A DNA stretch of 64,000 bases from the sequence record OU509535.1; one strand, 5' to 3'. The notes beneath the pieces are model-generated. The model searched no databases. It saw only the letters and a program-made list of their open reading frames with translations, and was not told where the DNA came from. Numbering within the stretch: the stretch's first letter is position 1; the number at the start of each line of letters is the position of its first letter. Positions 19,550 through 24,949 of this stretch are shown here, one piece after another. A program made the position numbers and the translations under genes.

Positions 19550-20026
19550 ATGGAAAAGACCAGCATCATCGAAAATGGTGATATTAACGATATTTTATCT
19601 TTGAACGGATTTAAAATTCATGATATAATGTTTTCAGTGAGAGACATAATTCAGTGCTTATTTTTATGTAGTAAAACAATGTATGATTATTATCATAGTG
19701 ATTTATGCAATATGTTTGTCATTACTATCAGTACTGAAAACTCTTTTATATTATCTTTTCCAATGAATACCAATGAAGAATTCATTCAAGCAGTACTAAG
19801 AAATGATAATGTAACTAATGCACAAACTGAAGTTCATAGAAAGAAGAATACTTATACAATTAAAGATGATAAAATCATTATGTTTGTTAGTAAAGGTTTT
19901 ATCATGGATAACTTCATTGTTAAAGAATCTTATCATGATTTTAAAATTGAACCTGATAGTTCTAAAGTTATGATTTATGCTAGTGATATTGAATCAATTA
20001 CAGTATCTGATCCTGAACTGGAGTAA
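19550..20026 (+). CDS. Hypothetical protein
   Basis: AAGGA SD, 158 aa. Confidence 0.7.
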   Translation: MEKTSIIENGDINDILSLNGFKIHDIMFSVRDIIQCLFLCSKTMYDYYHSDLCNMFVITISTENSFILSFPMNTNEEFIQAVLRNDNVTNAQTEVHRKKNTYTIKDDKIIMFVSKGFIMDNFIVKESYHDFKIEPDSSKVMIYASDIESITVSDPELE

Positions 20027-22194: not shown

Positions 22195-23055
22195 ATGAAA
22201 TTATATTTTTTATTTTCTTTTGCTGAAGATATGTATGGATTTGCAGAAGTTGCAGAAAGTGATGGAATCTCATCACATACCAGGCATCAAAAACACCCGC
22301 ATGAGTTTTATAATAATTTATTCATGTTTATGCAATATAAAATTTTCTCATCTGAATTTGATAATTTAGATCACCCATGGGAATTACCTTTAATTGATAT
22401 TCCAGACGAATACGTATTTCAGTTCATGTTAATGGGTCTGGAAGACTATGACTTAGTTGTTTATAACTACAGAACTAAACGCATTATGCTTGGAACTCAC
22501 GATAGTTCCATTGTATATGTTTCAAGTACTAATGATGAGTTAGCGTCTGATGAAGGTAATTATAGAAAATCTTATGGTTATATAGAAAATGATAATGATT
22601 TTATTTTAGATTTTCGTGTATCAGAAGAAGAAAGAAGAAAAAGAGAAACTTATCAAGTGGAGTTAAAACCAGATAATGGTTATAATGAAATTTTGGAAGT
22701 ACTTAAACCATACTACCTTGATATTGTTTATAAGAAATATAAACGCCTGCTAAATCATCTTAGCGAAAAAGAACCAATTGGTTTTGAAACCAATTCATTA
22801 CGTAATAGCATCATATTTCCACCTAGAGTAATGAAATATGGTGAAGTTTCTAAACACAAGATGAAACTATATCCCGATGATATTGAAGTTCTATATCATT
22901 CGTGGTTGAATAATGATGAACTATATGTAGAAAATAAAAAGTTAATGCGTATAAGTAATAATGATGATAGATTGCTACAAGCGTGGTATAATGATTCATA
23001 TTCTGCATTTACTGACAGTAATTCTGAGTATTGGAAGAACACAGGACAAAATTAA
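22195..23055 (+). CDS. Hypothetical protein
   Basis: 286 aa; PDEYVFQFML loosely echoes the FQYST module. Confidence 0.75.
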   Translation: MKLYFLFSFAEDMYGFAEVAESDGISSHTRHQKHPHEFYNNLFMFMQYKIFSSEFDNLDHPWELPLIDIPDEYVFQFMLMGLEDYDLVVYNYRTKRIMLGTHDSSIVYVSSTNDELASDEGNYRKSYGYIENDNDFILDFRVSEEERRKRETYQVELKPDNGYNEILEVLKPYYLDIVYKKYKRLLNHLSEKEPIGFETNSLRNSIIFPPRVMKYGEVSKHKMKLYPDDIEVLYHSWLNNDELYVENKKLMRISNNDDRLLQAWYNDSYSAFTDSNSEYWKNTGQN

Positions 23056-23058
23056 ACC

Positions 23059-23086
23059 AAGGACGGCGTAAAACCCGTCCTTTTTT
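23059..23086 (+). terminator. Intrinsic terminator
   Basis: AAGGACGG-cgtaaaac-CCGTCCTT then T tract. Confidence 0.8.
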
Positions 23087-23122
23087 AATACATAAATATC
23101 TGAACGAAAAATAGATTTAAGA

Positions 23123-23137
23123 TATAATGTTTATAAT
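23123..23137 (+). promoter_or_regulatory. Two tandem -10 boxes upstream of the non-coding element
   Basis: TATAAT at 23123 and 23132; -35 poor. Confidence 0.45.
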
Positions 23138-23138
23138 T

Positions 23139-23771
23139 ACAAGGATGTTGGATGCACAGGATGTGCATACACTAAAAACCTGATCCACTCGAAACAAGTA
23201 GAGGGCAGATGAGTATACCAACAATACGCCGTGTAGAGGATACCCGTTTAGGCGAGTCGACACGTTAAAGGGCAAAGGTAGCACGATTGCCCCAATCTCT
23301 CAGGAGATTGATAGGACGCGAATCCAGTTAAGTCTGGACATTAAGTGTAAAAGGGAGATTATTTTCTTTTAGATATTTTGGAAATAATCACAGTATTGAA
23401 TTGCTTGAATAGTTCGGTACTGAAGTGCAAGTATGTTTAAACTTGTGACCGTTGCATGTGACTGCGATAAGGGGAAACCGGGCAACCCGCCTCTGCCTAA
23501 TAAATTAAATTTATTAGAATTCGCAATTCAAGGAATTTCGACAGCTACGAGCTTCAAGGCTTAGCTTTTTATTTCTCTTCCCCTCCCTGTGGGGGGATGA
23601 AAATATCTCGTGCAAACGCCTTCAAGTATTGAAATTCACGAAGTGAATTGAAATTACTTGGTTCTGTAGTCGAACGACAGTGAGACGTGAGAACAAGTAA
23701 TTTCTGCATGTATCAACGAAGTGACAACGAGTTGATACATAGCACTTTAAAACATTATTGAATTCAATAAT
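23139..23771 (+). ncRNA. Candidate large structured non-coding element (ncRNA or replication origin)
   Basis: 740-nt gap with no ORF of 60 aa or more, GC well above flanks, many perfect hairpins (see findings). Confidence 0.5.
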
Positions 23772-23795
23772 TAATATTATTATGGTTTTAAAGAA

Positions 23796-24407
23796 ATGAA
23801 TTTAGAAGAACAGAAGAAAATCGCTTCAAGAAAACAAAAGAAAGGGATTGATATTAAGTACTTGAATAAGGAATTTCAAATAGTTCATAATCCAGATAGT
23901 TCTTTTTGTGGTTACAGAATACGAACAGAACAAAATACATTATCTAATATAAGCGAGTATGAAAATGGTACTGAAATAGGAATTATTCATTTCAGACCAA
24001 CTCAAACTCCAACAATACTCGGAGCTAGATATAAACAATATTTTGAAGAGAGATATACCAATGGAAACATTTCTATTCATTATACATTTTATAAAAGTGT
24101 ATTAATTGGTGAATACAAGAAATATGATTCAGATGGGAATTTAACACTAAGAGAATTCTATGATGGAAATGGTGATTGTACTAAAGAAATAAAAGAATTC
24201 ATTGGTTTTAATGGAACCGATGAGGAATTTATGCATTACGAATTTAAAGAAGATGAAGAATTTAATATATTAATGCGATATGGTTCTCACTTCAAATTAA
24301 TAAAAGAAATAAAGTTTAAAACAGAATATTTTAATTACGTATATGAAAATTGCCTCAAACGTGGCTATATACGCAATGATTTAAATAAAAAGAAATACAA
24401 ACACTGA
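23796..24407 (+). CDS. MORN-variant/YwqK-like repeat protein
   Basis: YENG, YTNGN, GEYKKYDSDGNL..EFYDGNG repeats. Confidence 0.55.
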   Translation: MNLEEQKKIASRKQKKGIDIKYLNKEFQIVHNPDSSFCGYRIRTEQNTLSNISEYENGTEIGIIHFRPTQTPTILGARYKQYFEERYTNGNISIHYTFYKSVLIGEYKKYDSDGNLTLREFYDGNGDCTKEIKEFIGFNGTDEEFMHYEFKEDEEFNILMRYGSHFKLIKEIKFKTEYFNYVYENCLKRGYIRNDLNKKKYKH

Positions 24408-24430: not shown

Positions 24431-24949
24431 ATGGAAAAGAATAAAAATAAACACGCGGTGCATTTCAGTACAAGAAAAAATGATCTATGGACAACACCAA
24501 AACCATTGTTTGATAAACTAAATGCTTTGTGGAATTTTACAGTAGATGTTGCTTGCAGTCATGAAACAGCTTTGTGTCTTAAACACTACACACCAGAAGA
24601 TGATGGTTTATCACAGGACTGGAGTAACGAAACATTTTGGTTAAATCCACCTTATAGTGATTTATCTCCTTGGTTATCAAAAAGCGTTGAAGACTATAAC
24701 AGAGGTGCTACTGGTTTGATTTTGGTTCCAGCAAGAACTGATACCAGAGCTTTTCAGAATTTTGCTTCTCCTTTTTGTGATGCTATGTGTTTTATAAAAG
24801 GAAGGCTTAAATTTGGTAATCCACTAAAACCGAATGATAAACTATCATCAGCACCATTCCCTTCTTGCATTATAGTACTGGATAAGAATCTAACACAAGC
24901 GAAAATAGATTGCCTAAAATCTTTAGGAAACACTATGGTTAACATATGA
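24431..24949 (+). CDS. dam: DNA N6-adenine methyltransferase (phage Dam family)
   Basis: WTTPKPLF..L, DVACS, EDDGLSQDW, WLNPPYS catalytic motif, LVPARTDT, FIKGRLKF. Confidence 0.9.
   Translation: MEKNKNKHAVHFSTRKNDLWTTPKPLFDKLNALWNFTVDVACSHETALCLKHYTPEDDGLSQDWSNETFWLNPPYSDLSPWLSKSVEDYNRGATGLILVPARTDTRAFQNFASPFCDAMCFIKGRLKFGNPLKPNDKLSSAPFPSCIIVLDKNLTQAKIDCLKSLGNTMVNI

Follow-up and report, generated by a model that had tools for sequence, protein, structure and literature searches.

What occupies the longest ORF-free gap in this stretch of jumbo phage DNA? The gap spans positions 23056-23795 of the window, the whole 64,000-nt stretch analysed from sequence record OU509535.1, and is the longest with an ORF cut-off of either at least 60 or at least 80 amino acids. 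It is flanked by ORFs at 22195-23055 and 23796-24407, with no ORF of at least 60 amino acids between them. The gap is 98.7-99.7% identical to RaK2, K64-1, KP13-7, RCIP0023, and Muenster, and the window is therefore a piece of a Klebsiella Alcyoneusvirus jumbo phage of the RaK2/K64-1 type. The GC content of 23139-23758 is 0.41 (up to 0.41-0.43 in the region), compared with 0.295 for the window; this is the most GC-rich 620-nt segment of the 64 kb, and only 0.02% of all 620-nt segments reach 0.41. The region folds far more favorably than its dinucleotide shuffles, with z scores of -5.2 (+ strand) and -6.5 (- strand). A first-pass annotation, made from the sequence letters, had described a GC-elevated element in the longest non-coding gap, insulated upstream by a terminator. 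The ORF scan, the base composition, and the terminator scan agree with this description on all three points. The eight stems that it listed are all present in the sequence, and support from compensatory changes extends to four of them (P6, P6a, P7, and P13 in Table 1). The promoter, the core, the hairpin with its U-run, and the G/C hairpin had been overlooked. Across the alignments, the parts occur in a fixed order: terminator, promoter, body, hairpin with U-run, near-invariant hairpin, linker, and tail hairpins.

Table 1. Positions of the predicted transcription signals and structural parts of the element in the window.
Feature	Position	Strand	Remarks
Intrinsic terminator of the upstream gene (ORF 22195-23055)	23059-23088	+	8-bp stem 23059-23082, then T-run; terminator scan
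Promoter	23101-23128	+	TGAACG box 23101-06; -10 TATAAT 23123-28
5' domain	23135-23269	+	
PK-A	23146-51/23218-23	+	5' domain; UGUUGG with CCAACA
H1	23152-57/23163-68	+	5' domain; variable hairpin
H2	23180-23208	+	5' domain; hairpin with conserved CGAAA...GUAG loop
P3	23213-15/23225-27	+	5' domain
P4	23230-34/23260-64	+	5' domain
Middle hairpins	23270-23389	+	
P6	23270-75/23287-92	+	6 of 6 pairs changed on both sides
P6a	23293-99/23304-10	+	RaK2-specific; compensatory changes between the two RaK2 paralogues
P7	23323-27/23334-38	+	Compensatory changes between the two RaK2 paralogues
Junction AAGGGAG	23351-57	+	Invariant in the 12-sequence alignment
P8	23357-66/23380-89	+	Middle hairpins; variable hairpin
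Conserved pseudoknotted core	23390-23535	+	
P9	23392-99/23414-21	+	Core
PK-B	23404-10/23526-32	+	P9 loop CUUGAAU with AUUCAAG; 7 of 7 pairs changed on both sides
P10	23427-31/23442-46	+	Core
S1	23451-55/23482-86	+	GUUGC/GCAAC; one compensatory G-C to A-U change, in Yen9-04 copy B
Pc	23463-67/23521-25	+	UGCGA/UCGCA; 99-100% paired
S2	23470-74/23490-94	+	AGGGG/CCUCU; 99-100% paired
P13	23497-505/23509-17	+	Core; variable hairpin
Terminator-like hairpin	23543-23574	+	AGCUA 23543-47/UAGCU 23562-66, bulged, then run UUUUAUUU
G/C hairpin P16 and conserved linker	23578-23632	+	P16 (CCCC-UGY-GGGGGG-AUGAA) at 23578-23602; kept in all copies, including that of E. coli
3' tail	23633-23771	+	
Tail hairpin	23633-49	+	
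Tail hairpin	23650-23704	+	Inner GUC 23669-71, loop GAACGACAGUGA 23672-83, GAC 23684-86
Tail hairpin	23708-40	+	
18-bp palindrome	23754-71	+	

BLAST matched the central part of the element at 67-84% identity in ~60 jumbo phages, whose host genera include Escherichia, Salmonella, Yersinia, Erwinia, Pectobacterium, Cronobacter, and Xanthomonas. In 121Q, XbC2, CBB, and fHe-Yen9-04, it falls within an unannotated gap (739-837 nt), and these gaps align in their entirety with that of the window. Full-length homologues fill comparably large gaps in phages of the genera Alcyoneusvirus, Asteriusvirus, Mimasvirus, and Eneladusvirus, and the element also occupies same-sized gaps in GAP32, Kaldavass, Serratia phage BF, 7t3, and metagenomic contigs. 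An exact-pattern scan with a 23-mer of the core (23447-23469) located 13 loci in IMG/VR and 14 in metagenomes. An exact-pattern search of 185,579 species-representative genomes gave no matches, and a search of plasmids likewise gave none.

Every RaK2-like phage that was checked carries two to three diverged paralogues. By a scan for the P16 motif, 121Q and Serratia phage BF have three copies apiece, and CBB, GAP32, and Yen9-04 have two. RaK2 possesses a second full-length copy that is 85% identical to that of the window, with the differences concentrated in helices and compensatory; within the 64-kb window itself, neither BLAST nor nhmmer detected a second copy. In a maximum-likelihood tree, copies located in the early-gene region ("A") and "B" copies form separate, well-supported clades, each of which spans several genera. 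This topology indicates that the duplication is old and that both copies have been retained. The two RaK2 copies cluster together. The B copies of Serratia BF and Yen9-04 adjoin gp46/EndoVII genes, with the baseplate hub on the other side in BF. Copy A of 121Q is found at the equivalent position, yet falls outside the B clade.

The helices were derived from a 24-sequence alignment and a scan for runs of covarying columns. Among 108 base pairs scored in the 24 sequences, with P3, P9, and P10 treated in a separate count, 90.8% of the cells are canonical and 64 pairs have changed on both sides. The alignment of the 3' core is 91.1% paired, as opposed to 83.0 +/- 0.5 in shuffles, and contains 26 pairs changed on both sides, compared with 11.1 in shuffles; slid registers are 32-46% paired. 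The corresponding values for the 5' domain are 89.9% against 73.6% paired and 31 of 39 against 17.1 pairs changed on both sides, with slid registers 29-47% paired. In neither alignment did any of the 500 shuffles reach the observed values. The shuffle control ignores phylogeny, while the slid-register control keeps it, and the slid registers fail equally clearly. Collecting homologues and checking their covariation, as the first-pass annotation had suggested, thus yielded two independently aligned domains that pass both controls. Approximately 20 helices and at least four pseudoknots are backed by compensatory base changes. Among the paired cells, G-U combinations (156) far outnumber A-C combinations (54), which identifies the + strand as the folding strand under selection. 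This pattern of substitution indicates that the element is a folded RNA or, at minimum, a folded + strand.

The most conserved part of the element is the core, with a compact center at 23447-23532. S1, Pc, S2, and PK-B are interlocked there about single-stranded residues that hardly vary. In the 5' domain, one strand of PK-A sits in the loop closed by P3, so that the two together form a pseudoknot. The AAGGGAG junction of the middle region differs in the 24-sequence set in phage 7t3 alone, by one base. In the copies outside RaK2, the P4/P5 internal loop and the strand following P6 covary over three bases (AUG/CAU, AUA/UAU, and ACA/UGU). A long-range P1 helix, pairing the 5' leader with the P13 insert, was considered and set aside; its support is limited to the CBB-type copies and locus L009, and it is absent from the window copy.

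The promoter and the terminators also lie on the + strand. A hairpin with a T-run corresponding to the terminator of the upstream gene is found at the equivalent place in XbC2, CBB, Yen9-04, and metagenomic relatives. From the promoter that follows, transcription is predicted to start near 23135. Its -10 box, TATAAT, does not vary across the 12-sequence alignment, and all copies of the 24-sequence set with a recovered 5' end have it, two truncated metagenomic copies having been left out of this check. Most copies have the form TGnTATAAT, with TGAAACG or TGGAACG upstream at a fixed distance. This promoter belongs to the "divergent RpoD-like" class described for phage CBB as TGAAACG-N13-TGGTATAAT (PMC5259590, Table S6). 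In CBB, 11 of the 18 instances of this class precede a gene block rich in DNA-synthesis functions (PMC5259590). That survey extracted only the 100 bp upstream of ORFs (PMC5259590), which would account for its missing the promoter of the element. A simple sigma-70 scan misses it as well, because the -35 region is not TTGACA-like. A further instance of the TGAAACG class lies at 19602-19629 of the window.

At the other end of the body, nearly all of the 24 aligned copies carry a hairpin that varies in sequence and covaries, with both sides changed in 5 of its 6 pairs, and that is followed by 5-7 U residues. A simple terminator scan did not call the bulged hairpin of the window (23543-23566). The U-run at ~23574 is the predicted 3' end of a short RNA form of ~440 nt. 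Sequence conservation nevertheless runs ~60 nt past the U-run, with a conserved loop motif further downstream, which would be odd if the RNA ended at this terminator. The conserved stretch includes the near-invariant hairpin P16, whose pairing is predicted, with too little variation for covariation to be scored. An indel shifts the reading frame in some copies, indicating that this stretch is not coding; a small ORF starting from the AUG after the G6 run was rejected accordingly, and in 121Q copy B it would read AUG-UAA. The loop motif, GAAYGN(0-3)WGTGA, lies 66-101 nt 3' of P16 in 11 of 26 copies, and its closing stems differ in sequence and covary. It occurs once in the 128 kb of the window (both strands), in the element itself. 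Outside this motif, the tail can be aligned within genera but not between them. We also considered a further promoter downstream of the U-run and ahead of the tail; its spacing, read from the 24-sequence alignment, fits neither the sigma-70 nor the TGAAACG class.

The first-pass annotation had assigned the element to no known family, and comparison with Rfam 15 upholds that position. With membership defined as a score at or above the gathering threshold of a family, no family was detected in the window or in ten homologous loci; the families compared include GOLLD, ROOL, OLE, HEARO, raiA, RNase P, tmRNA, group I and II introns, riboswitches, and CRISPR repeats. When 22900-24000 and the E. coli copy described below were scanned permissively, all matches stayed under threshold (E = 0.14-9.6) and well short of the gathering scores, and ARAGORN found no tRNA or tmRNA in the window. 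We discarded apparent resemblances to 5S rRNA, the CR-V region of RNase P, group I R/S elements, the sarcin-ricin loop, and the hammerhead core, as the covariance models gave no match and the helices differ. No description of the element was found in the literature. We conclude that RaK2-like jumbo phages carry a genuine class of predicted large structured RNA that had so far gone undescribed.

A protein-coding function has been annotated at this locus. The Muenster record places a 43-aa CDS at 23433-23564, and the RefSeq record of K64-1 places four hypothetical proteins in the gap. In most relatives, however, a stop or a frameshift interrupts the 43-aa ORF although the nucleotide sequence is conserved, and no conserved reading frame exists among the homologues. 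Substitutions in the helices are compensatory, which also speaks against chance hairpins in an AT-rich spacer, as do a GC content and a folding energy that are extreme for the window. We accordingly give almost no credence to small protein-coding genes or chance hairpins as an explanation of the locus.

The proposal of a multi-domain RNA made in the first-pass annotation is supported by the occurrence of the element in at least four phage genera, by covariation in two domains, by a predicted promoter and terminator of its own, and by the lack of a conserved ORF. With more than 400 nt, covarying helices and pseudoknots, and invariant unpaired residues, the predicted RNA fits the large ornate phage ncRNAs, a descriptive class rather than a homology family. 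It resembles GOLLD, ROOL, and OLE in its length of several hundred nucleotides, its many helices and pseudoknots, and its invariant unpaired residues (cryo-EM: PMC12286853), as well as in being phage-encoded with sporadic bacterial copies and in forming a stand-alone gene with no obligate protein neighbor. In contrast to these RNAs, the element is found in Gram-negative jumbo myoviruses, with two to three diverged paralogues per genome, and has an internal terminator followed by further conserved hairpins. It matches none of their Rfam models, so that ROOL and GOLLD, which had been named as examples, are analogies rather than relatives.

Among 5,426 complete E. coli genomes, two contain a complete homologue, with 70.6% identity to the 121Q copy and 80.6% to the B copy of Serratia BF; the tree places it inside the B clade. 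Strain LR-29-1 has the homologue in an integrase-bearing island inserted beside ffs, where it occupies an unannotated gap of 1.4 kb, with ~700 nt of non-coding DNA on its 3' side. The island also contains an IS3 element and the candidate defense system PDC-M45 (DuOB, DUF488, and mSLOG/DUF4326). The RNA is the sole part of the island that matches phage DNA; the flanking proteins have no homologue in RaK2-like phages, and one of them gave a single partial match, to an unrelated Pseudomonas phage record. These observations indicate that the RNA travels as a module of its own. Among the phages, the flanking proteins are unrelated between loci, no conserved protein partner was found beside the RNA across the loci, and the 121Q and Serratia BF copies are antisense to both adjacent genes.

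The element constitutes a conserved + strand unit, independent of its neighbors, with several pseudoknots in its fold and transcription signals on either side. We favor, with moderate confidence, the interpretation that 23101-23771 is an independent + strand gene whose predicted transcript, a large structured ncRNA, acts in trans through its pseudoknotted core. In the proposed mechanism, host RNA polymerase, possibly with a phage factor, would initiate at the TGAAACG...TATAAT-class promoter and produce the ~440-nt body, ending mostly at the hairpin and U-run. Some read-through would add P16 and the tail hairpins, yielding a form of ~640 nt. The stable RNA would then act in trans, with the pseudoknotted core as the working surface (a protein or ligand pocket, or a catalytic center) and the length-variable hairpins at the periphery. 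Action in trans is suggested by the variable neighbors, including the antisense arrangement in 121Q and BF, by the E. coli copy that lacks any phage protein gene, by the long retention of the paralogues, and by the precedent of large ornate phage RNAs (PMC12286853). An old multi-copy family in which the paralogue types are kept across genera, together with an island copy without a phage protein gene, also makes the RNA seem free-standing. It seems to rely on host factors or on phage factors encoded at other loci, or else to act without a partner.

The main competing explanation, which we consider rather unlikely, is a replication origin with an RNA II-like primer; a transcription-primed origin with 3' DNA hairpins had been the second proposal of the first-pass annotation. 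A persistent RNA-DNA hybrid around the U-run and the G6 hairpin would prime the leading strand. The + strand, once displaced, would form the downstream hairpins (GAACGAnAGUGA, C-GAA-G loops), which would signal single-strand initiation or primosome loading, and an infecting phage would amplify the E. coli island. ColE1 RNA II is a folded primer of ~550 nt with primosome sites downstream, and the layout of the element resembles that of ColE1: a promoter, a folded RNA of ~450-550 nt, a hairpin with a U-run, and single-strand hairpins no more than ~100-150 nt further on. However, a scan of the element revealed no antisense promoter of the RNA I type, and its fold is far more complex, pseudoknotted, and carried by a phage rather than a plasmid. 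We know of no origin primer with four pseudoknots and invariant loop residues kept from Klebsiella to Xanthomonas phages. An origin would fit the conservation beyond the U-run into the C4/G6 hairpin and the hairpins with the conserved loop GAAYGNnAGUGA, the presence of two to three copies per ~350-kb genome, the TGAAACG promoter class found in CBB mostly before DNA-synthesis genes, and the B-type copy, situated where the coding strand switches, with the gp46/EndoVII recombination genes on one side and the baseplate hub on the other. It fits less well with a hairpin and U7 that resemble a true terminator and with the lack of visible iterons or direct repeats at the element. Cumulative GC skew has no turning point at 23-24 kb of the 64-kb window, which is a weak test because all neighboring genes lie on one strand. 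At T4 oriF and oriG, a transcript from a phage-specific promoter primes replication, and active T4 origins lie at transcription strand switches (PMC3016281). Like these origins, the element has a promoter of a phage-specific class whose -10 box is of the sigma-70 type, occurs at more than one locus per genome, and at one of them coincides with a transcription strand switch. T4 R-loop origins nonetheless require only ~100 bp, consisting of a promoter and an AT-rich unwinding element, and no specific RNA sequence (PMC3016281), whereas ~440 nt of structure-constrained RNA separate the promoter of the element from the first AT-rich stretch. If true, the origin model would provide the first handle on the start of replication in RaK2-like jumbo phages.

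Much less probable is a cis-acting leader, in which the folded RNA, by sensing a signal or modifying RNA polymerase, would control read-through of the hairpin at 23543-23574 into the downstream genes. A long folded RNA, a terminator, and then co-directional genes do occur in this order in the window, XbC2, CBB, GAP32, and 7t3, and conserved sequence extends beyond the terminator. The downstream genes vary by locus, however, those that follow in 121Q and Serratia BF run on the opposite strand, the E. coli copy is trailed by non-coding DNA, and no riboswitch or leader family of Rfam was matched. It is the antisense and bacterial contexts that make this explanation unlikely. We attach slightly less weight still to a decoy or anti-defense RNA, in which the hairpin at 23578-23602 would mimic a type I-E CRISPR repeat or the RNA would sponge a host regulator such as CsrA. 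The G/C hairpin with its AUGAAA flank recalls I-E repeats, a resemblance that we take to be a lead only, and ACAAGGAUGU and CACAGGAUGU at the 5' end of the window copy resemble CsrA sites; the E. coli copy is located in an island with candidate defense genes. The Rfam match to CRISPR-DR37 is weak (18.4 bits, E = 3.4), far under the 40-bit threshold and on the minus strand, and the hairpin is invariant in phages of hosts as far apart as Xanthomonas and Klebsiella. GGA is not enriched (11 occurrences compared with 7.6 +/- 2.4 in shuffles), GGA sites are missing from 121Q copy A, and there is no Rfam match inside the element. Neither the CRISPR-mimic nor the CsrA idea explains the 440-nt pseudoknotted body.

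As a precedent, abundant ncRNAs of ~450 nt are expressed by the related jumbo phage PA5oct (PMC7318152). Its ncRNA001-004 lie in ORF-free regions of ~240-620 nt, and two of them are highly transcribed throughout infection (PMC7318152). Examined by eye as a possible homologue, the sequence of ncRNA002 contained none of the conserved motifs of the family.

The most far-reaching interpretation, which we consider rather unlikely, is a new kind of functional core, either a ribozyme or ligand-binding RNA centered on the multiply pseudoknotted 23447-23532 or an RNA initiator of phage DNA replication captured by the bacterial island. In the former case, the center would perform chemistry needed by jumbo phages; in the latter, the island would be amplified by, or interfere with, infecting RaK2-like phages. 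To our knowledge, large intricately folded RNAs are rare, and new classes (RNase P, group I and II introns, GOLLD, ROOL, OLE, and raiA) have brought biochemistry or puzzles. The present RNA is tractable, as it occurs in cultivable phages of Klebsiella, E. coli, Salmonella, Serratia, Erwinia, and Pectobacterium that are therapeutic candidates, offers natural paralogues with compensatory differences and a bacterial copy in a defense-type island, and has a core small enough for structural work. Its recognition would also correct the annotation of several records that place small hypothetical proteins across the element.

Small CDSs annotated as hypothetical proteins, one to four per record, are drawn over the RNA in the public entries of K64-1 (NC_027399) and Muenster (MT708547). 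Their reading frames are not conserved, and these CDSs probably represent false gene calls.

PA5oct, a related jumbo phage, produces a highly expressed ncRNA of approximately 450 nt, ncRNA002. Since comparison by eye revealed no sequence motifs common to ncRNA002 and the RNA family of the window, jumbo myoviruses may carry several unrelated large ncRNAs.

Within the family, the hairpins P8 and P13 both contain long insertions in 121Q copy B, L020, Turkey5, Escherichia coli LR-29-1, Serratia BF copy B, and 7t3. The insertions in the two hairpins share the same terminal motif of approximately 17 nt, CGUCCAAAAUUUGAGAA or similar, and resemble the duplication of an internal module.

The TGAACG-N-TGATATAAT promoter class occurs a second time in the window, which suggests that this phage-specific type also drives neighboring genes. 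At several loci of the A type, the RNA is followed, at a distance of zero to three genes, by a gene for an ADP-ribosylglycohydrolase, and in the genus of the window an ADP-ribosyltransferase (Muenster gene 123) is encoded about 5 kb upstream; this proximity may be mere synteny. Three otherwise unlike loci encode a DNA adenine methyltransferase at a position one to three genes 3' of the RNA. The homologue in E. coli LR-29-1 (NZ_AP027515.1) resides in an AT-rich island of approximately 10 kb between ffs and ybaA, which also harbors a candidate defense trio, PDC-M45.

Coordinates and content of features associated with the RNA loci
Feature	Location	Content or context
Small CDSs over RNA	window 23433-23564	region corresponding to the annotations
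Second promoter	window 19602-19629 (+)	
ncRNA002	L033:952-1402	PA5oct
ADP-ribosylglycohydrolase	L003:3100-4026; L039:2022-2330	also starts of post-element ORFs in L007, L012, L018
DNA adenine methyltransferase	window 24431-24949; L036:1531-2312; L040:1835-2066	L036, Yen9-04 copy B; L040, 7t3
E. coli island	L034:7752-18646	integrase interrupted by IS3; RNA homologue; three hypothetical proteins; recombinase
Additional non-coding DNA	L034:12550-13257	~700 nt, same island
PDC-M45 trio	L034 island	DuOB, DUF488, mSLOG/DUF4326
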